From Zygnema circumcarinatum SAG 698-1b (taxonomy: Eukaryota; Plantae; Zygnematophyceae), in the NCBI GenBank assembly GCA_037447605.1, contig CM074804.1:3263909-3327908 (forward strand): a stretch of 64,000 bases of DNA. Reading direction: 5' to 3'. Positions 16,973 through 58,477 of this stretch are shown here, in pieces. Each line of letters begins with the position of its first letter. Position 1 is the first letter of the stretch. The notes under the pieces are model-generated. The model ran no database searches and had not been told where the DNA came from. It worked only from the letters and a program-made list of their open reading frames with translations. The translations under genes and the position numbers were made by a program.

Positions 16973-19900
16973 TTATAGCATTGAAACACTCCTAACGCCC
17001 ATGTCTCGCGCATCTACTTGTTGGTGTTTCAGCTTCTCTTCAAATGACTCCGAAAGGAGGTCCTTCCGAGTGATCACTCCCAACACCTTCTGGGGGTTGG
17101 GAACAACATAAAGATGGCGCAGCCCCAACTGGCGGAAGAGAGTATACACTTGGGACAGTGTCATTCCTTCTGAAACTGTATAGGGAGATCGGTTGGCAAA
17201 TGGATGCAGATCTAAAAACATTTCCATGTGCTCCTCCGTTAGCTTTATGTTTTCGATCCGGAGGCCCTTCCCTGATCCAGCTTTGCCAAAATCAAAGACG
17301 GACGAAAATCCATTGGTTCCATTCTGAGCCCTTCCTGAAACTGGGGGCTCCTGCGTTGTCTGAAATGCGCGCTTGTTGTTCAATAGCACGAGAAGATGTG
17401 AGCGAAGCACAACCCCATATAGCCCTTCCTTGTCTTTAGAGTCTGGTCCATTGATAACAGGAAAAGCGTTATGAGTTGTTGTTTGCAGCACCTCGTATAT
17501 CCTTCCAACACGCTCCACTCCTACAAATGCGACGGGCTCCTTATGCACAGCGTCCATTGCCTCCAACCTCTTCATGAACTGCGGAGGATGGGCTTCAAGC
17601 AGTGGAACACGCTTGAACCTCAAGTGCGTGTCGTATATGGCATGGTTGAAGAAATCCCCAACAGTTTTGGCCACCAAAAGGACCAGCATAATTAATGGAA
17701 GCATAGTGAGATTTCCTGTAAGCTCCAAAAGAATCACACATAGAGATACAGTCATCCGCATGGAGCCTCCGAGGAATGACGCTGAGCCCAAGAGCGCATA
17801 GGTGCCCTCATTCACTCGCTCCGGACCAGCCACAGAGACCATGAATCGCCCAACAAGCCGTCCATATGTGGCACCGCAGAGAATGGAAGGGACAAAAAGG
17901 CCGGAAGGAACTGCAATTCCATACGTTATAAGGGAAAGAGTATACACACTAATAAGAGTAACACCTAGGGCTTGGTACCTGCAACATGACATACAGCCGT
18001 ACAGCTGAAGTTAGCTTCGACAAACAATGCCCTGATTGATGTTATTGCTCAGTCAATTAACAACCCGACTGATGTTTAACACGAACCCATTCACGGTTTT
18101 GGTGCATGACACCGTAGTTTATGAATTAGCTGTGACAAAAATCGAGCAAATGCAAGTCGATCCTTTACTTGTCATGTACGGGTGCAGGACCTATGAGGCT
18201 CACCACACTATTTATACGATTCCAAACTCCCCTTCAAGACTGGAAACCATTCAAACCAGAAGATAATGACAACGTCATCTCTAGATAGGTGGAGTACTTA
18301 CGAGAACTCGTTATCTGTGCCTGCGCTGAACAGGTTGCGAATGACATCATCATTAGTGTTGAACATGAGACTTGCGAGATCATTGTAATGCCCTTCAGGG
18401 CAGTTGAAAGATTTAAAATTTCCAATACGACCCTTTGTTGGGCACTGTATATGTGATGTGTCGGAAGGGCATGGCGTGCATGTAGCTGTCCATGGCAGAG
18501 AAAACTGCACGAGAGAAGTCACCAGGGCAATGCTGGCTGCATCTGCAACTCTAACCCAGGGAGACATCCTGCATGCAGAGAAAAGTTTACATATGAACCC
18601 ACCAACAGTGAGAAGTAGAATAGTAATGCGTGCAGGAAAAACACCAGAAGTGAGAGGAGCAGACGTCAAACAGTACTCGAATGATCTCAGGTGCAGTGGA
18701 CTTCACATCCATGTGATATACTACTCGTTCTGCATGTCCCATTTGGGCATGAGTTAACCGTCCAGATAGTTTAATGATGATAATTATTGATTATTGATTA
18801 ATTATAATTATTATTATTATTATCGATCACTTCTTCAACTCCTGAGGTAAGCTGTACAATCAATAGCTTCCTACAGATACAACCTTCAGCCTGAAAAGGC
18901 TCATATATCATCTAAGCGGCATAAGTCTTGAGCTGAAAGAAACGAAAAGTACACATGTGACTGAGCAGGATGTGTAGAGGAAACAAATTATAAGGGATAC
19001 GCGTCTCGTGATTCACAAGAAAGTTAAGCAGTACTGCAGCTTAAGCTCACCTATTAAGCCAGTCTCGGCGCCATGTACAGATGTTCAAGTTCAGTTGATT
19101 GAAGAGACTTCCCAAAATGCCTCCAGTGACTCCGAGTACCGCAACAGGGGCCAGTTCCAATAGACCATAATTCGTGTGTAAGTCAAATTCGTCGAAAATA
19201 ATGAAACCCCCTGAACTGTAGAGGCCACAATTCCCATTTTCACACCAAGCCATAGCTGTGCGTACTACCACTGCCACAACAGCATTAGTGAAGAACGCGC
19301 GCCAAAGCAAAGGGCTTCGCCACCTGCAAGCACAGGAGCAGAAGGGGGCGTTGAAAACGAGAGAGGAGGTTATAAGGTTGCAAACATTATAAACGAGTGA
19401 TTTTCCAGTATGCTCAATCCTAAGATGAAATCTATTCCTTCCTCAAAGAATGCGAATGGATACAACCCCCTCCACACCTACCATGATGTGGCCTCCTCCA
19501 GGGCGAACAACACCCCCCCCACGGGAGCTCGGAAAGCAGCGGCTACACCAGCAGCCGCTCCACATGTGACAAGGTCTCTTCTGTCACGATCATTCTTAAA
19601 GAAGCGAAGCCACTTGCAGTCAAGGCCATAGCGGCGAGAACCCCCCTGTCCAAGCAGGGCTGCTATACAGGCTCCTGTGTGTACCAAGGGGCCCTCCTTT
19701 CCTACCACTAAGCCGCCCCCTACAGAGCCGATGCTGCCAAATATCTGCAGCAGAAGAGGGTCCAAGTAAGGGAGGAGTTCAGCAGATGAAGGCAAATATA
19801 AACATAGCAAAGCATTTGGAATAGCGGTCAGGAGGAGGGATCAAAGAAAGCGAGGAACTACAGGAAGACGGTCGCCGACTCATTATGAGAGGGGCACCTG

Positions 19901-42189: not shown

Positions 42190-45100
42190 CTAAATCACAC
42201 TTCGACACGTGTCTGCCTTCTGCCACGTGTAATACGGTCGGCATGCGCCCGAAGGCACCACCTGATAGCCGGTGCAGATCTGCCCTCACAACAACACACA
42301 AAAGAGCTCGTGATTTCCTTCACCGTCGTGTACCCTGTCAGTGACAGACCTACATATTCAAGTTGGGGGGGCTTATCCCCCCCTCAGATTTTTGAATATT
42401 CAACTTTTTTTATTTTATCTGAAGTATTTTATGATGAAAGAAGGCTTAGCCGCCCCTCAGCAAAAATCCTGGAATCAATAGGGTAACCGTGTTGCTGTAT
42501 GATGTCAAGGAAGAAAGACGAGAGCGAGGTTGAGCCATGTTGGGTGCTAGTGAATCCCATGCATGCATGTACATACATGGAGCTCGATGCGTGTACGCAT
42601 GCATGCATGCATGGGATGAGCGTGCCGTACCCTCTGCCCCACGTAGAGATTCCCGCAGTTGATGCCGCGGTTGATTTCGAGGAAGTCGAAGCGCGCCAAG
42701 GAGCGGGTCCTCCCGAGGATGGCGGCGCAGCTCTTGCTGCCGCGGTCGCTCTCGAGGACCACATCGGCGCTCGTGCACACCTTCGTGCTGTCGGGCGGCC
42801 CCGCCACCAGGCACACCTGCAAGGGGGGGGGGGGCTCGCCCTCGCTCGTTCGGGGCGNNNNNNNNNNGGAGGGGAGGGGAGGGGAGGCGGACTCAGGGCG
42901 GGTGGTATTAGCGCTTTTGGTGGTGTTCATAGCGTCCTACTGCACCTGCTGGCCAGGCTGAATGCCGATGGGAGTGCCATCAGGCGCTCTGGTGACGCCA
43001 CATACGAGTCCTGGATTCAGCTTGACGAGGGAGCCTACAGCGAGGCCGAAAGCGGTTTCAATCGCCCAGCACGAGTCGTTCTGCATTCACACATTTGACC
43101 TCTGTCACTTAGAGTAGGTCAAGAACATTGTGAACAGAACGAACAAGATAAAGAAGCGAATTGCTTTTTTTGTCACAATGGAGGTGGGGTCTCCGAATGT
43201 TGACTGCGTCTGGTTGGTCTGGCTTGGCCATACAGATTGGTTTTCGTATATTTTATTTTAAGAAGAGAAGCAGTTTCAGCATGTTCGGCATGAAGCGGAC
43301 CTGCTGAATGCTGTAGAGAACCTTGCAGGTTTTTGCTGCTGTATTTCGAATGTTTAGGACATCACCCATCCACAACGGATTACAAAGATCCTGCACATTG
43401 ACATGAGAGAGAACACGAGAAGATAATAAATGAATAACAAATAACAAATGAATGAAGATGAATAGAAGGTTGTGGCTCTGTCGAAGAACATCGATTGAAG
43501 AGAGTGAGCATGTGCAAAATCATCCTAATGAATTTTCCTTACACAGCAGCAGCCACACGTACCCGATTGGCCCTCGTGTTTTGACTTTTCAGTTGCATTA
43601 TTGTTAATCCAGAAGCGTAAGCGATAATATAGCAATAATCTCCCGCTTTGACAGTGTACTTCTGCGGCGATGGCGAGTTCGCTTGCACCGCTGCACAGAA
43701 GCATTCAATATTTCAATATAGCACGCTACTAAGACCACGCAAGCTGAAAAGGGGCAGCAAGAAAAGAGGAAAGAGGTGTTCCGAAATTCCCTATTTCCAG
43801 ATAGAACCGAGAACTACATTGTCGTTGATGTGCGATGGGTCCAAAGTCCAAACAATGCGAACACACACCCACACACATTGGAGCTGTGTGCAGTGCAAGC
43901 ACTTACGCGGAACACAGAGCGGCCTGCCGTCACTGTTGACCGCGCTGACATATCCTACAAAGCAGACGCAATGGTAGTAGCCGTTGTTCTCATTCACGCA
44001 GTTGCCCGCTCCGCACGGGTTCAAGCTTGTGGCGCTACACACGTCCACTGCCACAAGCGCGATAGCGCAACAACGGACATTCGATAAAGGCACGTGGAAG
44101 TTGGATCGGACGGCTTGCCTTTAATAAGGGTTGAGCCCAGTGGGCACTGAAGGTTAGGAGAAAGTTATACACAATGCAAAGTCCGATTGACTATCGGAAC
44201 AATAACAAAAGCAACGCGATTGTTTCTATGATATGCAAGTACTTACCGAGGGCGCAAGTCTGCGTGTTGTCGGTATTCTGAGCAGCGACATACTTGCTTG
44301 GGCATTGGCATGTGTATGAACTCCCAGAGTTTATGCAGGTGCCTCTCCCACAAGGGTTGATTCTCACATTGCAGGGGTTGCCGTCAGGCGCTGCACATGC
44401 AGGGAGAGGGGCCTTGAGATAAGCCAAAGCGACTATCGGGACAAGGTTGTATGAGTTTCATCAGCAAGCATGATCATGAGCTTTCAGGGCCGGGAGGAGC
44501 ATATCGTTTGCGAATTCAACTTTTTGTCATGAAACTCCGTTTGTACCAACTGGTTGTCGTTGTCCAAAAAATAGTAACTTGGAATGTCCTATGGTTGCGT
44601 TGCTACGCAGCATCCAAACAGAGAGGCCGTACCACCTGCAAGGCTTCAATCCTCAATACCAAAAACAACTACAATAAGAATATTTGGAAGACCTTGTTTG
44701 AGGAACGTGCGCGAGCAAGTACTACTCACAGGCGATGACAGGGTAGAGGGCGGAGAGGGCCGCGAGTCCGCAACTTCCCTGCTTGATGCGCGCGTAGCCG
44801 CTGCGGCCCCACCCGGGGCCGAACGAGTTCCGTACGATCCAGTACGCGACGCCGCTCTCGCTGCCGTACCCGACGAGGGCGAGGGCGTGGCTCAGCTGCG
44901 AGTCGTCCTTGCAGTCTCCCTCTGAGTCGGTGAATATGTCCCACTTCACAGCGTTCACACACACACACAAGCAGAACAACAGGGTATGCTTTGAACATTT
45001 ATAAGCATAATCTCAATGAAGTGATTCTCAATGAGCAGCACGGAATTCTATTTTATACTACGTACAGCTTGGTAATGCAAGCAGAAGGTCCCATAGTCTA

Positions 45101-48100
45101 GAAATGGTTACTTGAACCGTTCACTTGCCGAAGAAGCGACTTATTCAAAACGCATATAGCATATCCATGATCGCTTTAACCCGCATACCAGAGGTTCTGT
45201 TGACGATTTGAGCCTAGTCCCTCCCACTACTCTCACTCTCTGACATGCTTGCAATGTCTGAATCACGACAACTCTCAAGTGCACACACTGAAAAGCAGAT
45301 GATCCAATCAAGCACACACCGAAAGAGAAGAAGTAAGGAGAAAGCTCCTCGGCCTCAAAACTCCTTAATAAAGAAATGAAGAGAAACAAGCATTTATGTC
45401 AAGCCCTCAGGCTTCCACCTATGCTCTGACTAACTCCCCTACTTCCTGCTGCCCATACAGCCAGGCAACTACACTCGGCAACACGAGCCAAGCTACAGCT
45501 GAATTAAGTTGAACTCTCAGGTTGATTAACTCCTAATCAACACCTACTTAAATACTAAGCGCTGCACTACTCCACGTTCTACTGCACGCCGCCGCGCGCC
45601 ACCGCGCTCCACCGCACAGCGCACCTCCATGTCGCTGGTGATGCTCCACGTCTCCAGGAGCTCGCCTCGCACCGCGCTGGAACTCACCCTCATGGTCGCC
45701 ATGGCCAGGAGGGAGAAGGTCCGTACAGTTTCCTCCTTCCAAAGGCGCACCGACCTTCTCGAAGCTTCGCATCCACGCGCGCGCTTCTCCAGCGCCTGTG
45801 TTGGTCGTCCGTACATCCATGCGTCTCGTAAGCTCCGGACATTTCGTACGGTCGTCCACTAAAGCAATAAGCAATACAAAGCTGACACGCAGCCTATCGC
45901 TGCGCGCCACGTGTCCAAACTATACTTATCAATTCTAAGTAGACTCCTGTGGTGGCGCGGCCTATCGCCGCCCTCCACGTGTCCTACTCAGACTTCTCGT
46001 GTTCCCACTAAGAACAGCGCCCTAGCGCCCTGTTCAGACTGTGACCAAATCTCCTAAGGACCGCCGACAAAAGGCTAAGGACCGTACAGCGTACAATTCT
46101 AGGCTATACCCTTATTGTACCCAACATTCCCCCTCTCGGTCCTAGCCACCCAACACAACCAAAAGTTCCTACGCCTATGAGGATACTATTACGGCAATCC
46201 ATCTTTCCTTGGTACCATGAGACTCCTCAGCTCACTACTCAAGGCTACTCCCTATTGCTATCATCCGCCCCCTCTTAAACTACAAGCAGGGTTTGGTGTT
46301 CAGCAACACTACCCATCATGAGTGCAGCAATGCTAGCGAAGTCAGCCGACTCGTTCGTCATCCTCATTGTCCATCCGTCATTGTTCCGCTCACGTCCCCC
46401 CGTGATCCCGAAGAATGGAACGACTCTCGTAGCGTCCTTGTTCAACGGAGCCTCCATGCCAGTTGCAGTTCCGGTTTCTCCTTCCTCCTGTACCGCCAGC
46501 GAGGTACATGGTACGGCCGAGGGGCCGGCCTCACCTAATGACGCGGTGCCAGGCGCCGCAGGCTCAAACCCGATCAACGGTCCGGATGTCAAGCACGGCG
46601 TGACCGGTGACGCTCCCTCCGAATCGGACTCCACCTTCACATCCAACGGCGCTGATTCCTCCTCCTTTCTCACATCACACGGCACAAGGTCCGCTTGATC
46701 GACGGTCGCCTCCAATCGGCTCATCTCCACCATCGATTTGAAGTAAGCAGGCTCTCCACCAAGGATCGCCGAATCGCCACCGTCCGCTCCAATAGTAATT
46801 TCGAAATTGGGCCACGGCTCAAAGTTCTCCTCGAAATCCTTGTCGCCTTTCTCTGTTGTTTTCTCCTGCAGCTTGAAGCCTCTGCTCCTCTCTGCAAACT
46901 CGTGCTTCATCACACTCACGTAGCACTTCAGACCCCACACACGAGCGACATAAGATATGTAATTTCCTTCGCTGTCCAATCGAAAAGTCTTCACCTTTTG
47001 CCCGGATTCTAGCTCCACCACCTCTTGCCACTTCTCAAATGCAGCAAAGGTCTCAGCTTTGCTCTCCAGCATTCGGACCCGAATTTCCCGAGAACAATCA
47101 TTCAGAAAAGTAATAAAGAATTGTAAGCCTTCTAAATTAGCAAGAGAATTGGGGCTGCACATATCAGTGTGGACCATCTCAAGCCTTTCCTTGGCTCGGC
47201 CCTCCTCTTCACTCCCATGGCTTGAAAGCTGGCTATGAGCTTTCCCAGCAAGGCAATCTGTACAAAACTCTACCTCTGCCACGAACGCACGTTGAAGTCC
47301 CTGGGTGTGTAGGACATCTCCCATGATGATTGTCCTCTTCATCTTCCCTTCTCGAATCTTCAGCTTCACACGTCCTCCTCGGGAATCGTACACCCCCTCT
47401 CCAGTTTTTGCGTTGGCACATCTTGCCGCCACCATCTTTCTTTGCTCTGCACCAAAGGTTTTGTCAGAGCACCTGTGCTTTGAAACACCTGCATCAACTA
47501 GACATGGCAGCTCGACCTCCACATCTCGGACACCTCCAACAAACTCGTCTTTCTCAAAATCACCCCGTGCACCCAACCCCATCATTAGGTTCATCTCGGT
47601 AGTGCCGCCTCGACAAACAGCGGCTCTGTGACCCTTCTTGCCGCACTTGAAGCAGGTCCCTCGAAAAATGGACCTCTTGGTGATTTCATCTTCACTCGAA
47701 GGCTCGTCCGAGCTCTCGGGTCGTCCCTTGTTCTGGTAGCAGTCAGTTGACACGTGCCCAAGCTTGCCGCAAGTAAAACATGTTGGGGTGGGTCTTCGAT
47801 CATTCCTCCCCTTTTTCTTAGCCTGGATTAGCAACACATTGTCTACACCTGAACTCTCCTTTTCTATCAATGAGTCAGCCTCTCTTATCCTCCCTTTGAC
47901 TTGCTCCATGGTCATGGGCAAACTGGAAAGATGAGTCCTCAATGACTCCACTGTTCCCTCATATTTGCTTGGCAATCCTACCAGGAATTGGTGAATCTTG
48001 CTAGGTAATGGAATCGGCTGCTTAGCCACTACACACCTCTGCATAAGGCTATCAAATTTCACTATATAATTGGTTAATGTTTCTCCCTTTTCCATCCTGC

Positions 48101-51100
48101 AAGCACTTATTTCTGCATACAGGTTTACTGCCAATCCTCCCTCTGCAACCTCATACACTGCTTGAAGACTAGTCCACATCTCAGCAGCAGATCTTAAGTC
48201 TAGCAGCATGGTAGAGGGGCCATTGCCTACTGTCATGGCGATGTATCCTGCGGCCTTCTTGTTCTTCACTTGCCACAGGTCAAACGCCTTCACGTCCGCC
48301 GTCCCCTCAGAGTCGGCCGGAGAAGGTGGTTCCGGGGTGCTCCCGTCTACGTACTTGAAGAGGCCCTTGCTCTCCAACAGGTACGTCATCCTCCACCTCC
48401 AATGTCTGTAATCTGTCCCTTCGAAAACCGGGACCCTATACCTGGGTTCCTCATCGGAAAACGCTCTGATACCACTGTTGACAATTTGAGCCTAGTCCCT
48501 CCCACTACTCTCACTCTCTGACATGCTTGCAATGTCTGAATCACGACAACTCTCAAGTGCACACACTGAAAAGCAGATGATCCAATCAAGCACACACCGA
48601 AAGAGAAGAAGTAAGGAGAAAGCTCCTCGGCCTCAAAACTCCTTAATAAAGAAATGAAGAGAAACAAGCATTTATGTCAAGCCCTCAGGCTTCCACCTAT
48701 GCTCTGACTAACTCCCCTACTTCCTGCTGCCCATACAGCCAGGCAACTACACTCGGCAACACGAGCCAAGCTACAGCTGAATTAAGTTGAACTCTCAGGT
48801 TGATTAACTCCTAATCAACACCTACTTAAATACTAAGCGCTGCACTACTCCACGTTCTACTGCACGCCGCCGCGCGCCACCGCGCTCCACCGCACAGCGC
48901 ACCTCCATGTCGCTGGTGATGCTCCACGTCTCCAGGAGCTCGCCTCGCACCGCGCTGGAACTCACCCTCATGGTCGCCATGGCCAGGAGGGAGAAGGTCC
49001 GTACAGTTTCCTCCTTCCAAAGGCGCACCGACCTTCTCGAAGCTTCGCATCCACGCGCGCGCTTCTCCAGCGCCTGTGTTGGTCGTCCGTACATCCATGC
49101 GTCTCGTAAGCTCCGGACATTTCGTACGGTCGTCCACTAAAGCAATAAGCAATACAAAGCTGACACGCAGCCTATCGCTGCGCGCCACGTGTCCAAACTA
49201 TACTTATCAATTCTAAGTAGACTCCTGTGGTGGCGCGGCCTATCGCCGCCCTCCACGTGTCCTACTCAGACTTCTCGTGTTCCCACTAAGAACAGCGCCC
49301 TAGCGCCCTGTTCAGACTGTGACCAAATCTCCTAAGGACCGCCGACAAAAGGCTAAGGACCGTACAGCGTACAATTCTAGGCTATACCCCTATTGTACCC
49401 AGGATTCCCCCTCTCGGTCCTAGCCACCCAAAACAACCAAAAGTTCCTACGCCTATGAGGATACTATTACGGCGATCCATCTTTCCTTGGTACCATGAGA
49501 CTCCTCAGCTCACTACTCAAGGCTACTCCCTATTGCTATCATCCGCCCCCTCTTAAACTACAAGCAGGGTTTGGTGTTCAGCAACACTACCCATCATGAG
49601 TGCAGCAATGCTAGCGAAGTCAGCCGACTCGTTCGTCATCCTCATTGTCCATCCGTCATTGTTCCGCTCACGTCCCCCCGTGATCCCGAAGAATGGAACG
49701 ACTCTCGTAGCGTCCTTGTTCAACGGAGCCTCCATACCAGTTGCAGTTCCGGTTTCTCCTTCCTCCTGTACCGCCAGCGAGGTACATGGTACGGCCGAGG
49801 GGCCGGCCTCACCTAATGACGCGGTGCCAGGCGCCGCAGGCTCAAACCCGATCAACGGTCCGGATGTCAAGCACGGCGTGACCGGTGACGCTCCCTCCGA
49901 ATCGGACTCCACCTTCACATCCAACGGCGCTGATTCCTCCTCCTTTCTCACATCACACGGCACAAGGTCCGCTTGATCGACGGTCGCCTCCAATCGGCTC
50001 ATCTCCACCATCGATTTGAAGTAAGCAGGCTCTCCACCAAGGATCGCCGAATCGCCACCGTCCGCTCCAATAGTAATTTCGAAATTGGGCCACGGCTCAA
50101 AGTTCTCCTCGAAATCCTTGTCGCCTTTCTCTGTTGTTTTCTCCTGCAGCTTGAAGCCTCTGCTCCTCTCTGCAAACTCGTGCTTCATCACACTCACGTA
50201 GCACTTCAGACCCCACACACGAGCGACATAAGATATGTAATTTCCTTCGCTGTCCAATCGAAAAGTCTTCACCTTTTGCCCGGATTCTAGCTCCACCACC
50301 TCTTGCCACTTCTCAAATGCAGCAAAGGTCTCAGCTTTGCTCTCCAGCATTCGGACCCGAATTTCCCGAGAACAATCATTCAGAAAAGTAATAAAGAATT
50401 GTAAGCCTTCTAAATTAGCAAGAGAATTGGGGCTGCACATATCAGTGTGGACCATCTCAAGCCTTTCCTTGGCTCGGCCCTCCTCTTCACTCCCATGGCT
50501 TGAAAGCTGGCTATGAGCTTTCCCAGCAAGGCAATCTGTACAAAACTCTACCTCTGCCACGAACGCACGTTGAAGTCCCTGGGTGTGTAGGACATCTCCC
50601 ATGATGATTGTCCTCTTCATCTTCCCTTCTCGAATCTTCAGCTTCACACGTCCTCCTCGGGAATCGTACACCCCCTCTCCAGTTTTTGCGTTGGCACATC
50701 TTGCCGCCACCATCTTTCTTTGCTCTGCACCAAAGGTTTTGTCAGAGCACCTGTGCTTTGAAACACCTGCATCAACTAGACATGGCAGCTCGACCTCCAC
50801 ATCTCGGACACCTCCAACAAACTCGTCTTTCTCAAAATCACCCCGTGCACCCAACCCCATCATTAGGTTCATCTCGGTAGTGCCGCCTCGACAAACAGCG
50901 GCTCTGTGACCCTTCTTGCCGCACTTGAAGCAGGTCCCTCGAAAAATGGACCTCTTGGTGATTTCATCTTCACTCGAAGGCTCGTCCGAGCTCTCGGGTC
51001 GTCCCTTGTTCTGGTAGCAGTCAGTTGACACGTGCCCAAGCTTGCCGCAAGTAAAACATGTTGGGGTGGGTCTTCGATCATTCCTCCCCTTTTTCTTAGC

Positions 51101-54100
51101 CTGGATTAGCAACACATTGTCTACACCTGAACTCTCCTTTTCTATCAATGAGTCAGCCTCTCTTATCCTCCCTTTGACTTGCTCCATGGTCATGGGCAAA
51201 CTGGAAAGATGAGTCCTCAATGACTCCACTGTTCCCTCATATTTGCTTGGCAATCCTACCAGGAATTGGTGAATCTTGCTAGGTAATGGAATCGGCTGCT
51301 TAGCCACTACACACCTCTGCATAAGGCTATCAAATTTCACTATATAATTGGTTAATGTTTCTCCCTTTTCCATCCTGCAAGCACTTATTTCTGCATACAG
51401 GTTTACTGCCAATCCTCCCTCTGCAACCTCATACACTGCTTGAAGACTAGTCCACATCTCAGCAGCAGATCTTAAGTCTAGCAGCATGGTAGAGGGGCCA
51501 TTGCCTACTGTCATGGCGATGTATCCTGCGGCCTTCTTGTTCTTCACTTGCCACAGGTCAAACGCCTTCACGTCCGCCGTCCCCTCAGAGTCGGCCGGAG
51601 AAAGTGGTTCCGGGGTGCTCCCGTCTACGTACTTGAAGAGGCCCTTGCTCTCCAACAGGTACGTCATCCTCCACCTCCAATGTCTGTAATCTGTCCCTTC
51701 GAAAACCGGGACCCTATACCTGGGTTCCTCATCGGAAAACGCTCTGATACCACTGTTGACAATTTGAGCCTGGTCCCTCCCACTACTCTCACTCTCTGAC
51801 ATGCTTGCAATGTCTGAATCAATACAACCCTCAAGTGCACACACTGAAAAGCAAATGATCCAATCAAGCAGACACCGAAAGAGAATAAGTAAGGAGAAAG
51901 CTCCTCGGCCTCAAAACTCCTTAATAAAGAAATGAAGAGAAACAAGCATTTATGTCAAGCCCTCAGGCTTCCACCTATGCTCTGACTAACTCCCCTACTT
52001 CCTGCTGCCCATACAGCCAGGCAACTACACTCGGCAACACGAGCCAAGCTACAGCTGAATTAAGTTGAACTCTCAGGTTGATTAACTCCTAATCAACACC
52101 TACTTAAATACTAAGCGCTGCACTACTCCACGTTCTACTGCACGCCGCCGCGCGCCACCGCGCTCCACCGCACAGCGCACCTCCATGTCGTTGGTGATGC
52201 TCCACGTCTCCAGGAGCTCGCCTCGCACCGCGCTGGAACTCACCCTCAGGGTCGCCATGGCCAGGAGGGAGAAGGTCCGTACAGTTTCCTCCTTCCAAAG
52301 GCGCACCGACCTTCTCGAAGCTTCGCATCCACGCGCGCGCTTCTCCAGCGCCTGTGTTGGTCGTCCGTACATCCATGCGTCTCGTAAGCTCCGGACATTT
52401 CGTACGGTCGTCCACTAAAGCAATAAGCAATACAAAGCTGACACGCAGCCTATCGCTGCGCGCCACGTGTCCAAACTATACTTATCAATTCTAAGTAGAC
52501 TCCTGTGGTGGCGCGGCCTATCGCCGCCCTCCACGTGTCCTACTCAGACTTCTCGTGTTCCCACTAAGAACAGCGCCCTAGCGCCCTGTTCAGACTGTGA
52601 CCAAATCTCCTAAGGACCGCCGACAAAAGGCTAAGGACCGTACAGCGTACAATTCTAGGCTATACCCCTATTGTACCCAGCAGGTTCAAAGTAATTGCTA
52701 TTTTCTCACCGTGTTCCACACCATGAGCTGCTGTGTGAGAGTTATGAACGCTGTGACGGGCTGTCGGCTGACAGCAGCTTTGAGGGCCAAAACATTGGAC
52801 GCAGGAACCTGCTCATATCTCAGCACATACACTATCCGCTGTACGGACGCAGCCTGCTCAGCATCCGCACAAGCTCAAAAAGTACATATCAGCACTCGCG
52901 GAGTCCCCGCCCCCCAAGTGACTTCAGAACAGTCGCCTTCCAAGCTCCGAACCCTTGAGATTGCGCAAACCCTTAAACTCCTGAAGGCCGCGATTAAACC
53001 TTCGACCGTGGCCCACGGGGAGGCTCGCATCAGCACGAGTGCACGCCACGACGAACCACCTCAATAAAGTAAATCATTGAAATCTGACACCTGACGAAGT
53101 CATGTTAAAAGTCAATGGACCCTATTAAGTCAACGAACACGACAGACGCAACCACAAAGGCCGCCACATCTCAGCAAGTCACGTTCGCGTAAAGTCACGT
53201 GTGTGCGCCTACCCACCCGGCAGGCGGCCTCGGTGTTCGGTCCGTACGGTCCGTACGCCGGCGCCGTGGCGAGGCCGCCCGAGGCCGCCGCGAGCCAGTC
53301 GAGGACGCGCGCGGGCCACCCGCCCAGGCACGAACCGACCCCGGAGCAGTCCCGGACCTGCGCCTCCGCGAGCGCGACCGCCGCGGGGGGTGGCCCGCGC
53401 CACACGCCGTACGCGCCCTCCACAGCGGCCACCGCCGCGAACACCGTGCACGACCCTGCGGGATGCCGCGCAGGGGTTTAGGGTTAAAGGTGTGAGGGTG
53501 AAGGGTGTATGGTTGAGAGTTTAGGGATAGGATGTGAGGGTGGAGGGTGTAGAGTTTTGGGTTGAGGGTTTAGGCACCGCATGCGCCCTGGTCCTTGGCG
53601 GGGCCAAAGTACGGGGACCAGTCGACGGCGGGCGGGAGGGCGTCCATCCAGCTCGCGTGCCGTGACAGCACGTTCAAGCGCGTTGTGCCGCCATCGCTGC
53701 CTGCAGGCGGCGCCGCCAGCCCGGACGGGGCTGCACGCACGTGCGTACAGGGGCAAGGTAAGGACAGGGACAAGGACGAGCGCTCAAGGGGCAAGGCCAG
53801 GCGGTGCAAGCAGCATTCCCGCCATACTCACTCAAAGCCACGGGGACACTCACAGGCTAAGTTGTTGACAAGTGCACGGCGAAGTGGCAGCCACAGTTGG
53901 TTGGCGTTGTTGGGAGCATCGTTAGACTTGCAATACCACTGCTTCAAATACTCTCCACTACGGGATCCGGTAGCATCGAGGCACAGGCCGGAGTTTACGT
54001 TTTGCCATTGAACGGAGAAATCCACAGAGCTGCTGTAGATGGGCGTCCATAGCTGGTTGGTACCGCCATGGCATGCTGCAGCCCATCCGCCACCCCATAT

Positions 54101-57100
54101 AGACATCAGACAGAGATTTGAGAATAGCACCAGCGTCTAAGACTAGTCAATAACATTCAGGGAATCCTTAAGAAACGCGTTTGGATGATTCTTCCACTGC
54201 CCACGTGTTATCTTTTTCCTATCTTAAAGTTGTTTCAGGCCAAGTGATCATCTCAAATATCCAGATAGCGTAAACTCTGTATAGAACGAAGAGAGCTAAA
54301 TTATGTCTTGTGTATTGGTTTTAACCAGGGCGAGAGCTCACTGAATATAGTCAAGACTGTTTCAGCATCTTTGCTAGCCCATGGAACATCCAAACACATT
54401 CCTCGCGTTTGCTGAAAAGAGTAGGCGTTCCCGACCTTGTTGAGGAACCACAGGGCTCCGACATTACCATCAAATCCATTAGGATCTGCAATCGCAACAG
54501 AGCTTCTTTGTTCAGAAACAATGATTTATATGCGTCAAAAGCGAGCCAAGGAAATGCATGTCAAAGAAATCGCGTGCATGCTGCATGCTAAGGGGCGGAA
54601 AAAGTTGTCGCCACTTAAAGAGTGATTCGAAAATATTGTGAAAGTTGCATTGGCAGAAACAGATTTTAAGGATATCTCAAAGGATATTCCCACTAAGCTG
54701 TGCGGCAATACGTACAGTCAGAAAACTGAACTCGAGTTCCGACATTAGAATTGTTTCCCTCGGCAGACCACGCGTTCAACGAATTCGAGGGTACAACAAG
54801 GAAGTTCCCTATTGAAGGATCGGTCCAGAGCTTCAGATTTACTGCAAGCAGAGAGACATGGAATTGATGTGTGTGCGTGCATGTGCACAGGAGAGAGTAA
54901 AGTAGAGAGCGGGCGAGGAGAGAGGAAGGGAGAGAGGGAGAAGGAAAGGGGAGAGAAGAAAAAGAGAGCTTGCGCACGAGAAAAAGTGAGGAAAAGAGGA
55001 AGAAGAGAGTGAGCAAGAAAGCAAAGAGAACAAGAAACAAAGAAAAAGCCAAGTGCAGCAGTGTATCAACCGACTCTCATTTGAAACAATCAAAGTCATC
55101 ACAATATACACTTGAGGTGTTGTTGACAAGTGCACGGCGAAGTGGCAGCCACAGCTGGTTGGCGTTGTCGGAAGCATCGCTAGACTTGCAATACCACTGC
55201 TTCAAATACTCTCCACTACGGGATCCGGTAGCGTCGAGGCACAGGCCAGAGTTCACATTCTGCCATTGAACGAAGAAATCCACAGAGCTGCTGAAGATGG
55301 GCGTCCATAGCTGGTTGCTACCGCCATGGCATGCTGCAGCCCATCCGCCACCCCATATAGACATCAGACACAGAGATTTGAGAATAACACCAGCGTCTAA
55401 GACTAGTCAACAACATTCAAGGAATCCTTAAGAAACGCATCTGGATGATTCTTCCACTGCCCACGTGTTATCCTTTCCGTATCTTAAAGCTCTTTCAGGT
55501 CCAAGTGATCAACTCAAATATCTAGATAGCGTAAACTCTGTATAGAACGAAGAGAGCTCAATTATGTCTTGTGTATTGGTTTTAACCAGGGCGAGAGCTC
55601 ACTGAATATAGTCAAGACTGTTTCAGCATCTTTGCTAGCCCATGGAACATCCAAACACATTCCCCGCGTTTGCTGAAAAGAGTAGGCGTTCCCGACCTTG
55701 TTGAGGAACCACAGGGCTCCGACGTTACCATCAAATCCATTAGGATCTGCAATCGCAACAGAGCTTCTTTGTTCAGAAACAATGATTTATATGCGTCAAA
55801 AGCGAGCCAAGGAAATGTATGTCGAAGAAATTGCGTGCATGCTGCATGCTAAGGGGCGGAAAAAGTTGTCGCCACTTAAAGAGTGAAACGAAAATATTGT
55901 GAAAGTTGCATTGGCAGAAACAGGTTTAAGGATATCTCAAGGGATATTCCTACTAAGTTGTGCGGCAATACGTACAGTCAAAAAACTGAACTCGAGTTCC
56001 GTCATTAGAATTGTTTCCCTCGGCAGACCACGCGTTCAACGAATTCGAGGGTACAACGAGGAAGTTCCCTATTGAAGGATCGGTCCAGAGCTTCAGATTT
56101 ACTGCAAGCAGAGAGACATGGAATTGATGTGTGTGCGTGCATGTGCACAGGAGAGAGTAAAGTAGAAAGCGGGCGAGGAGAGAGGAAGGGAGAGAGGGAA
56201 AAGGAAGGGGGAGAGGAAAAAACGAGAGTTTGCGCACGGGAGAAAGTGAGGAAAGGAGAAAAGAAGAGAGTGAGCAAAAAAGCAAAGAGAACGAGAAACA
56301 AAGCAAAAGTCAAGTGCATCAGTGTGTCAACTGACTCTCATTTGAAACAACCAAAGTCCGTGCAATGTGCTCTTGAGGTGTGTATGTACTCAGGCCACAA
56401 AGAGTACCTGCTGAAGGCGACTGAGGTGGTGGAGGCGACGGAGGAGGTGGAGAGGGTAGATCTGGACCATAAACGCACATCGCAACTTGTCACGAAAAAA
56501 AATCAAAAGAATCGTCAACTTCCATTGCGCAAAAGTGTAATTCATGTGTGCGGATAGCCTCCTTTTAACCGAACACCGAACGACATTCAATTTGTCATTT
56601 TGGAGTACATATCCTTATTTTGTAAACGCTTTTATGCGAAGGCCCATCTGTCCTTTCGTCCTGCGAGCACTGCTCTCAGCTCACTTCACACACGTGCAGC
56701 CTTCGTGGTTATTGTAAAGCAGAGGGGTAAGTTTACAAAACTTGCGATGGCACAGCCGTCGACCAAAGCAGGACAGGACAAAACAGCATTTGGAGGTGGG
56801 CGGTTGGTTGGTTGGCCCTCCGCTCACTCACTGCATCGTCCGTACGCGGTCTGGCATCCTGTCAAGCAGTACTCGTCCGTGTAACCGCACCAGTTGCTCG
56901 AAGAGCAGCACGAAGTGTCGGGACATCGCCGCTGCGCCGCGGACCCGCAACTGCCTGAAAGAAAATGAGCGACACAGCAACATGCAAACACAACAGGCAA
57001 GCAAAAGAAAAACAAACAAACAAACACGCTGGTGAAATACATATAAAAAATAAACTAGAATAGATAAAATATCAAGCGGCAAGTACATAAACAAAAGTTG

Positions 57101-57759
57101 AACAAAGAAATTGAAAGATAGAAATGCGCATGATACCTTATAGCGCTTAAGAGATCAAGCATAGCACTTGACAAGAATGAAATGTGAGAAAAAAGATGCT
57201 ATTACCAGATGGTAGACATCGACATACTTAGTTTGGAAACACAAAAGACAAGGAGCAAGGACTTAGCAAAATGAAAAATGAGAAGCAATACTTTATATGG
57301 ACGATAAAGATGTAAAACAACAAACGAAAACAAGAAAAACTCGTAACAGAAAGATGAAAACAAACCTAAATGCAAAAGAGCTAAGCACAAAACAAACAAA
57401 AGGAAACAGGAAACAACGGAAAAGCAATCAATGCAGTATTTGTGGAAGCAATGCGACATCAAGTTTCGCCTTTAGGGGCAGTCAATCGCTGACCATCAGT
57501 CGATATCGGAAGCATGCTCCGGCGAGTTTCATTTGTCGGACCCACTTCAAGGGAAGCTCCTTCTCCTGTTCACAGTCCATTTTGAAAAGTGAGAGGTAAG
57601 AATCAGAGTAGGGAAGAAATAAACAAGACATAGGAGACAATAGGAGAACCCTCCCTCCCTCCCTCTCTCCCTCCCTCCCTCCCTTCCCCCCACACCTGCA
57701 GCTCCCCGCCATGACGCTACAAGGAGCGCCCAAAAGACAAGCGCCACCATTCGCGTCAT
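42190..57759 (-). CDS. Modular secreted protein: signal peptide - hevein (CBM18) - SPPPP linker - 2x ricin-B lectin - papain C1A protease - 2x EGF - 3 LysM plus a broken 4th LysM
   Basis: Exons on the minus strand: 57759-57696 signal; 56954-56832 [39 protein letters not shown]; 56461-56408 [11 protein letters not shown]. Ricin A: 56101-55976, 55746-55603, 55333-~55120. Ricin B: 54841-54716, 54485-54342, 54075-53854 (CLD...NQLW repeats). Papain: 53730-53578, 53455-53217 (QGACG|SC), 52853-52710, 44943-44730 ([19 protein letters not shown]). EGF: 44390-44247, 44047-43907. LysM: 43690-43563, 43390-43301, 43080-42946, 42816-42631, 42279-42190. All joins are GT-AG and in frame; the ricin A donor is cryptic. 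Confidence 0.8.
45198..46126 (-). repeat. LTR 1 (3' LTR of the array)
   Basis: TGTTG...CAACA ends. The PPT agagggggaa lies immediately before it on the minus strand (46127-46136). Confidence 0.95.
46275..48389 (-). CDS. Copia Gag plus degenerate protease and truncated integrase (copy 1)
   Basis: Gag helical region, two CX2CX4HX4C knuckles ([28 protein letters not shown]), VDAGVSKH, and integrase-like [22 protein letters not shown] and [13 protein letters not shown]. No RT or RNase H motifs. Confidence 0.9.
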   Translation of the reverse strand: MTYLLESKGLFKYVDGSTPEPPSPADSEGTADVKAFDLWQVKNKKAAGYIAMTVGNGPSTMLLDLRSAAEMWTSLQAVYEVAEGGLAVNLYAEISACRMEKGETLTNYIVKFDSLMQRCVVAKQPIPLPSKIHQFLVGLPSKYEGTVESLRTHLSSLPMTMEQVKGRIREADSLIEKESSGVDNVLLIQAKKKGRNDRRPTPTCFTCGKLGHVSTDCYQNKGRPESSDEPSSEDEITKRSIFRGTCFKCGKKGHRAAVCRGGTTEMNLMMGLGARGDFEKDEFVGGVRDVEVELPCLVDAGVSKHRCSDKTFGAEQRKMVAARCANAKTGEGVYDSRGGRVKLKIREGKMKRTIIMGDVLHTQGLQRAFVAEVEFCTDCLAGKAHSQLSSHGSEEEGRAKERLEMVHTDMCSPNSLANLEGLQFFITFLNDCSREIRVRMLESKAETFAAFEKWQEVVELESGQKVKTFRLDSEGNYISYVARVWGLKCYVSVMKHEFAERSRGFKLQEKTTEKGDKDFEENFEPWPNFEITIGADGGDSAILGGEPAYFKSMVEMSRLEATVDQADLVPCDVRKEEESAPLDVKVESDSEGASPVTPCLTSGPLIGFEPAAPGTASLGEAGPSAVPCTSLAVQEEGETGTATGMEAPLNKDATRVVPFFGITGGRERNNDGWTMRMTNESADFASIAALMMGSVAEHQTLLVV
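48463..48474 (-). promoter_or_regulatory. Primer-binding site complementary to initiator tRNA-Met (second copy at 51741-51752)
   Basis: TGGTATCAGAGC on the minus strand, 1 nt inside the LTR boundary. Confidence 0.93.
48476..49404 (-). repeat. LTR 2 (shared middle LTR)
   Basis: Flanked by a PBS on one side and a PPT on the other. One terminus is mutated (cccagga). Confidence 0.95.
49553..51802 (-). CDS. Copia Gag plus degenerate protease and truncated integrase (copy 2, intact N-terminus starting inside the LTR)
   Basis: Near-identical to copy 1, with the added N-terminus [46 protein letters not shown] (F.G..Y..W..RM Gag motif). Confidence 0.9.
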   Translation of the reverse strand: MSESESSGRDQAQIVNSGIRAFSDEEPRYRVPVFEGTDYRHWRWRMTYLLESKGLFKYVDGSTPEPLSPADSEGTADVKAFDLWQVKNKKAAGYIAMTVGNGPSTMLLDLRSAAEMWTSLQAVYEVAEGGLAVNLYAEISACRMEKGETLTNYIVKFDSLMQRCVVAKQPIPLPSKIHQFLVGLPSKYEGTVESLRTHLSSLPMTMEQVKGRIREADSLIEKESSGVDNVLLIQAKKKGRNDRRPTPTCFTCGKLGHVSTDCYQNKGRPESSDEPSSEDEITKRSIFRGTCFKCGKKGHRAAVCRGGTTEMNLMMGLGARGDFEKDEFVGGVRDVEVELPCLVDAGVSKHRCSDKTFGAEQRKMVAARCANAKTGEGVYDSRGGRVKLKIREGKMKRTIIMGDVLHTQGLQRAFVAEVEFCTDCLAGKAHSQLSSHGSEEEGRAKERLEMVHTDMCSPNSLANLEGLQFFITFLNDCSREIRVRMLESKAETFAAFEKWQEVVELESGQKVKTFRLDSEGNYISYVARVWGLKCYVSVMKHEFAERSRGFKLQEKTTEKGDKDFEENFEPWPNFEITIGADGGDSAILGGEPAYFKSMVEMSRLEATVDQADLVPCDVRKEEESAPLDVKVESDSEGASPVTPCLTSGPLIGFEPAAPGTASLGEAGPSAVPCTSLAVQEEGETGTATGMEAPLNKDATRVVPFFGITGGRERNNDGWTMRMTNESADFASIAALMMGSVAEHQTLLVV
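51754..52682 (-). repeat. LTR 3 (5' LTR of the array)
   Basis: TGTTG...CAGCA ends. It is followed on the minus strand by the PBS. Confidence 0.95.
53475..53575 (+). repeat. Degenerate telomere-like heptamer run filling a papain intron
   Basis: gggtttagggttaaaggtgtgagggtgaagggtgtatggttgagagtttagggatag...gggttgagggtttagg, with roughly 7-bp periodicity. Confidence 0.7.
53861..56380. repeat. Direct tandem duplication of about 1.26 kb (53861-55119 / 55119-56380) carrying one three-exon ricin-B domain per copy
   Basis: Both exons and introns align closely between the two copies. Confidence 0.95.
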
Positions 57760-57769
57760 CCGTGACGTG

Positions 57770-58035
57770 ACACCTCCTCCTCCTCCCTCGTCTTTCTCTT
57801 CCTCCTGCTCCTCCCTCCTCCCTCCTCTCTCCTACCTCCTGCCTCCTCCCTCCTCCCTCTTCTCTCCTCCCCCCTCCTCCCGCCTTCCTCCCTCCTCCCT
57901 CTTCTCTCCTCCCCCCTCCTCCCGCCTTCCTCCCTCCTTCCTCCTCCCTCCTCCCTCCTCCCTCCCTACTCCCTCCTCCCTCCTCCCTCCTCCCTCCTTC
58001 CCTCCCTCCCTCCCTCCCTCCCGCCCTCTCTTCCT
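57770..58035. repeat. Polypyrimidine (CCT/CCCT) low-complexity tract upstream of the modular protease gene
   Basis: Directly visible. A similar purine tract (GGA-rich) lies at about 30600-30830. Confidence 0.85.
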
Positions 58036-58477
58036 CCGGAAGCCGAAAGGCCTCTTGGCGTCTGCGCAGGCGACACTGCGGGCGGGCTCCGTGGACGTTT
58101 GCGGGACACGTGGCGAATGCACATTGGATGTGCTACAAAAAGATTTTCATTGACCGTAGGTCGCGCAAGTCATCAGTAGGTCCCCGGCTGCATCAGGTCA
58201 ACGGCTGACGGCCACCGACCAGCCACGACCGACACGGAGCCAGTTTGGCCGCCTCTCCAGTTTTACGCATGGCAGCCGGCGATTGGCTCGTCTCCAACAA
58301 TTGTTTTTCGTCAACATGGGAGAAGCATGAACTGCGAACATGGCCCGTTCATTGCTTTGTCGATCCATTGCAATCGGACGGCTGGCGTGCGTCGTCGATA
58401 TTACGACATTGTGCGACGATGTCTTCATAGTGCGACTTTCATGCGACTTCTGACAGGCGACATTATCGCACTATGGG

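Follow-up and report, generated by a model that had tools for sequence, protein, structure and literature searches.

We analyzed a stretch of 64,000 nucleotides from Zygnema circumcarinatum SAG 698-1b (Zygnematophyceae; GenBank assembly GCA_037447605.1, contig CM074804.1, positions 3,263,909 to 3,327,908 of the forward strand), hereafter called the window, in which positions 42190 to 57759 appear to hold a single gene that joins lectin modules to a papain-like cysteine protease of the C1A type. All coding signal of this region lies on the minus strand, and our gene model runs from 57759 down to 42190 in 20 exons totaling 2889 nt, which corresponds to 962 codons followed by TAG. The splice sites were placed by eye on the DNA and then verified by their coordinates; in a scripted coordinate check, all 19 introns (19/19) have GT-AG borders, the exon phases are compatible throughout, and the first stop encountered is the TAG at 42192-42190. 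An earlier note on this DNA had proposed about 20 exons joining in frame from a signal peptide to LysM repeats, and the model agrees with that proposal in exon number, in its fitting phases and in having no internal stop. The introns measure 122 to 741 nt, with the single exception of the one that separates exon 12 from exon 13, which is 7766 nt long. The encoded modules follow one another in the order signal peptide, hevein, an 18-residue Pro/Ser linker, ricin-B 1, ricin-B 2, a linker of ~30 residues, mature papain domain, EGF, EGF, LysM 1 to 3 and 14 residues of a fourth LysM.

Exon 1 (57759-57696, minus strand, as are all exons below) holds the start codon (ATG at 57759) and, judged by eye from its hydrophobic core, a signal peptide of 21 residues plus 1 nt, ending at the donor GT at 57695-57694. 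A CT-rich low-complexity tract (AG-rich on the gene strand) occupies 57760-58150, directly upstream of the start codon. Pfam and solved-structure searches were run exon by exon, each exon separately. Exon 2 (56954-56832) encodes a hevein module (CBM18) with eight Cys residues, recognized as Chitin_bind_1 (PF00187) at 34.4 bits against a cut-off of 27.8. Its nearest solved structures are pokeweed lectin-C and wheat germ agglutinin, and in the alignment to lectins of this type all Cys residues are kept, as are the Ser and two aromatic residues of the sugar contacts, the first aromatic position being occupied by Ser. Exon 3 (56461-56408), a short Pro/Ser-rich linker, has GT-AG borders and runs from phase 1 to phase 1.

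Two ricin-B trefoils follow, the first in exons 4 to 6 (56101-55976, 55746-55603 and 55333-55112; phase 1 to 1) and the second, a tandem copy of the first, in exons 7 to 9 (54841-54716, 54485-54342 and 54075-53854). RicinB_lectin_2 (PF14200) is matched at 34.4 bits by exon 6 and at 36.6 bits by exon 9 (cut-off 25.6), with weak matches on exons 5 and 8. Q-x-W motifs are visible in the ricin-B units (CBM13 beta-trefoils, PF14200 and PF00652), and among solved structures a ricin exon of the second trefoil is nearest to the CBM13 of a Streptomyces xylanase and to the ricin B chain. A block of ~1260 nt, comprising three exons and their introns, occurs twice in tandem within 53854-56400 as a direct repeat of 88-98% identity; when the copies are compared, their exons agree at 92-98.6% and the two inner introns at 94-96%, with 9 synonymous versus 10 nonsynonymous codon differences. 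This degree of divergence argues for a genuine duplication of the ricin block and not for a doubling introduced by assembly, and constraint on the two copies looks weak to moderate. Since the block both begins and ends in phase 1, its duplicate stays in frame, and near the joint of the duplication, at about 55120, a GT in what had been intron sequence, now copied, serves as a new in-frame donor.

The protease domain is divided between exons 10 to 12 (53730-53578, 53455-53217 and 52853-52710), which encode the ~30-residue linker and then the N-terminal two thirds of a mature C1A papain with its Gln and Cys, and exon 13 (44943-44730), which encodes the C-terminal third with His and Asn. Peptidase_C1 (PF00112) is matched at 37.8 bits by exon 11 and at 57.8 bits by exon 13 (cut-off 20.7), and nothing of the papain sequence is missing between exon 12 and exon 13, which the longest intron separates. 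For exon 12, an alternative in-frame acceptor lies 3 nt upstream. The catalytic Cys aligns with Cys25 of ananain, exon 13 aligns with residues 159-217 of cathepsin H, the catalytic His and Asn included, and the Gln sits 6 residues before the catalytic Cys, in exon 10, with the codon between them split by intron 10/11. The four catalytic residues that the earlier note had read from the letters, Gln19, Cys25, His159 and Asn175 of the C1A family, are thus all in place. An I29 propeptide was not matched by Pfam in any exon or open segment, and just ~30 residues separate the second ricin-B trefoil from the usual mature start.

Exons 14 and 15 (44390-44247 and 44047-43907) encode two EGF-like modules with six Cys residues each. 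Exon 14 matches EGF (PF00008) and EGF_CA at 19.5 bits (E = 0.0012), just below the cut-offs (21.5 for EGF), and the second module was detected only through its 42% identity to the first. LysM repeats 1, 2 and 3 are spread with fitting phases over exons 16 to 19 (43690-43563, 43390-43301, 43080-42946 and 42816-42631). LysM (PF01476) is matched at 28.8 bits by exon 16 and at 24.9 bits by exon 18 (cut-off 20.9), while the third repeat reaches 14.1 bits on exon 19, a low score that follows from the splitting of each LysM repeat over exons. Among solved structures, LysM2 shows weak matches to the LysM of a fern chitinase and to that of a Volvox chitinase/lysozyme. Third-codon-position GC content forms a strong mosaic along the gene, with 0.86-0.95 in exons 10, 11, 13 and 19 versus 0.47-0.66 in the ricin-B exons and in the first exons of the LysM part (16 and 17), for which gene conversion among paralogues is one idea.

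An assembly gap (N, 42858-42867) flanked by a C-run and by CT-rich low complexity falls between exons 18 and 19, in an intron that measures 129 nt as assembled (exon 18 ends at 42946 with the donor at 42945-42944; the acceptor at 42818-42817 precedes the start of exon 19 at 42816). An intron is needed after exon 18 because its frame reaches a stop 2 codons past the donor. This intron is phase 0 at either junction, and splicing it out restores the end motif of LysM2, just as that of LysM3 is restored across the next junction. The gap, being intronic, therefore has no bearing on the reading frame, and a further exon hidden within it is unlikely.

Exon 20 (42279-42190), assigned by reading the sequence, completes LysM3 and then encodes the initial 14 residues of a fourth LysM before the TAG. 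The array of LysM repeats described in the earlier note consequently stands with three complete repeats in frame; the fourth ends after 14 residues, the first 13 of which mirror the start of LysM1. Past the TAG, the -1 frame runs on to 42032 through another 53 codons without a stop and closes with a motif that resembles the endings of LysM2 and LysM3, together with a Cys-rich tail. T-runs are present at the switch between the frame of LysM4 and this -1 frame, and a 1-nt indel there, arising by mutation or as an assembly error, is possible on this reading of the letters. Pfam detects no LysM downstream of the TAG in any frame, and the local alignment of the downstream frame to the LysM exons is not significant (13 of 300 shuffled sequences score at least as high).

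The long intron that divides the papain domain (7766 nt) contains a Copia-type nonautonomous long terminal repeat (LTR) element on the minus strand (45198-52682), ~7.5 kb in size and of tandem form, LTR-internal-LTR-internal-LTR, with a period of 3278 nt. Its 929-nt LTRs are 98.7-99.6% alike, indicating that the element is young, and its 2349-nt internal parts agree at 99.8%. A polypurine tract comes before each LTR, and after each lies a primer-binding site for initiator tRNA-Met. The classification rests on the internal open reading frame (ORF), in which Pfam finds a copia-type gag with two zinc knuckles, faint integrase traces only, and no match to reverse transcriptase. A perfect 5-nt target duplication surrounds the whole array (52687-52683 and 45197-45193), and the rare tandem form suggests unequal recombination between LTRs after a single insertion. 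The element lies in the sense of the gene, 22 nt past the donor of exon 12, with the flanking donor and acceptor intact. Upon its removal the intron would measure 276 nt, like its neighbors; this ordinary size, together with the perfect target duplication, shows that the element entered a pre-existing intron.

Taken together, we consider it probable, though well short of certain, that the locus is one minus-strand gene, composed of a variable head, a C1A papain lacking its propeptide, two EGF spacers and a LysM tail, which has since gained an LTR element and, as assembled, lacks most of LysM4. The proposal of the earlier note that three types of lectin and an apparently catalytic papain share one in-frame chain is borne out by the splice phases, by the 123-nt intron that joins the ricin and papain parts, and by the papain part having neither a start nor a signal peptide of its own. 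From comparison of its two copies, the second trefoil would stem from a recent tandem duplication of the 1.26-kb three-exon block.

Several observations weigh against this reading. Within the protease, Thr replaces Trp26 beside the catalytic Cys and Phe replaces Trp177 after the Asn, and the activity of a papain without an I29 propeptide, which normally guides folding, is uncertain. The early end of LysM4 counts on the same side, as does the retrotransposon, since an LTR element in sense orientation inside an intron can terminate transcripts or cause their mis-splicing. Searches for relatives add two further points. In a search of 1.84 billion representative sequences, the last ricin exon yielded 137 matches, none of them a close relative (48-51% identity at best), and the nine long top matches combine ricin-B with Ig, alginate-lyase or other parts, never with papain. 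A word-indexed search with the papain C-terminal exon returned nothing, a result that is little informative because its length window of 53-168 residues excludes full-length kin. With the same exon, a metagenome scan gave 49 loci of at most 59% identity, none of which (0/49) also matches the EGF or LysM exons, and the ESM Atlas holds generic papain fragment clusters only.

The alternative that survives best, and that we regard as unlikely yet deserving of serious weight, is that this is a recently disabled or decaying copy, in which the LTR element causes transcripts to end or to be mis-spliced within the papain part and a nonsense or frameshift mutation has removed most of LysM4, leaving at best a lectin-only or truncated product. 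The youth, orientation and position of the element, so close behind a donor, speak for decay, and so does a TAG that falls early in LysM4 while the -1 frame stays open with its LysM-end-like, Cys-rich tail. The two ricin copies, moreover, differ to a similar degree in exons and introns, and their nearly equal counts of synonymous and nonsynonymous differences suggest weak constraint. Yet all other exons are intact, with 933 codons free of stops and frameshifts, and so are the splice sites on either side of the element; introns bearing transposons are often still spliced out. The stop itself may stem from an indel that assembly introduced at a T-run, and the resemblance of the downstream frame to LysM is not significant when set against shuffled sequences. 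Impairment of this gene copy by the element and by the shortened LysM4 nevertheless may have occurred. Five sequencing runs of one organism, which contain 0.22-0.45 of the sampled words versus ~0.27 expected for exon-internal words, cannot be classed as RNA or DNA and were not used as evidence for expression.

It is improbable that assembly artefacts account for the second ricin unit, for the tandem form of the element or for the TAG and frame shift of exon 20. The scaffold does have N gaps and long homopolymer runs, the internal parts of the element are nearly identical, and the frame switches at T-runs, all of which speak for such errors. The ricin units, however, differ by 2-8% and carry intron indels, more than a collapsed or doubled pile of reads would allow, and the LTRs also differ among themselves. 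Very improbable is a reading of two genes as one, namely a secreted hevein and ricin-B lectin (exons 1 to 9) beside a separate papain-EGF-LysM gene (exons 10 to 20), for although retention of the intron after exon 9 would give a stop within 8 codons and thereby a lectin-only product, that short intron has a strong donor, a strong acceptor and matching phases, and exon 10 offers no signal peptide, no propeptide and only a Met just before the mature protease start.

If the locus is indeed one gene with head, papain, EGF spacers and LysM tail, it would belong to a family of modular secreted proteins with variable binding heads, the head of this copy being one hevein module and two ricin-B trefoils. 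After its secretion, the protein would be anchored by hevein and LysM on N-acetylglucosamine polymers, be it chitin, peptidoglycan or the wall glycans of the alga itself, and by ricin-B on galactose-type glycans, and the tethered cysteine protease would cleave proteins near the bound surface. The sequence establishes how the exons are arranged, which domains they encode and that the catalytic residues are retained, whereas secretion, glycan binding, protease activity, expression of this copy and a role in defense or in wall remodeling are our inferences. Should the protein be made and active, glycan recognition (of chitin or peptidoglycan through hevein and LysM, and of galactosides through ricin-B) and proteolysis would be united on one secreted chain, and this in a lineage close to the base of the land plants, where receptor and apoplastic protease occur as separate proteins. 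Such a protein would provide a testable model for extracellular defense or wall turnover before receptor kinases took over. The locus would also show how a head can grow, by a duplication of a three-exon block that keeps phase, and this copy may be a natural knock-down by a young retrotransposon.

A bolder reading, which we put forward as speculation and think doubtful, is that the family represents a recognize-and-cut branch of extracellular immunity older than the land plants. Exchangeable heads of lectins or leucine-rich repeats (LRR) and a LysM tail would direct a propeptide-less papain to microbial surfaces, and the head would take over from the propeptide as an aid to folding or as a latch. 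If that were true, the locus would have caught the evolution of a head in the act, by duplication of an exon block, and would offer a natural insertion allele.

Neither among the neighboring ORFs nor elsewhere in the window did we find a second member of the papain-LysM family. An ordinary neighboring gene on the minus strand contributes a long exon (16976-17992) that codes for the last part of a CLC chloride channel domain and for a CBS domain.

Among known systems, land-plant apoplastic proteases of the RD21, Rcr3 and Pip1 type are likewise secreted C1A enzymes that share the catalytic Gln, Cys, His and Asn, and RD21 carries a Cys-rich addition at its C terminus (granulin). Proteases of this type possess an I29 inhibitory propeptide and are not known to carry lectin, EGF or LysM modules. 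A second likeness is to class I chitinases (hevein plus GH19), to the LysM chitinases of ferns and Volvox and to CBM13 xylanases, all of which use a glycan-binding module to place the enzyme on a polymer surface; it is from such enzymes that the nearest solved LysM and ricin matches of the algal gene come. Chitinases and CBM13 xylanases are, however, glycosidases, whereas the algal gene combines a protease with three classes of lectin.

A further close parallel is found in Chlamydomonas, for which the combination of peptidase_C1 with LysM has been named (PMC2728734). In Chlamydomonas reinhardtii, six entries combine Peptidase C1A with two or three LysM (PMC6362431, Supplementary Table 3); one of the six also has EGF-like domains, the two largest carry SRCR and fucolectin or WSC and C-type lectin modules, and three others carry galactose-binding-like domains (PMC6362431). 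According to the text of the same paper, C1A-lectin combinations are not retained in vascular plants (PMC6362431). We found no report in the literature of a hevein or ricin head on a C1A-LysM protease, nor any functional study of such a protein. The C. reinhardtii mosaics thus resemble the Zygnema gene in having a C1A papain and two to three LysM on one chain, some with EGF-like or lectin modules, and have been catalogued with no function tested; they differ in that none is listed with hevein or ricin-B, in a comparison made by domain listing and with a chlorophyte. As predicted from its modules, the Zygnema gene would therefore share a core C1A-LysM design that is already catalogued, if unstudied, in green algae, and would add to it a head of hevein and ricin-B that is new there.

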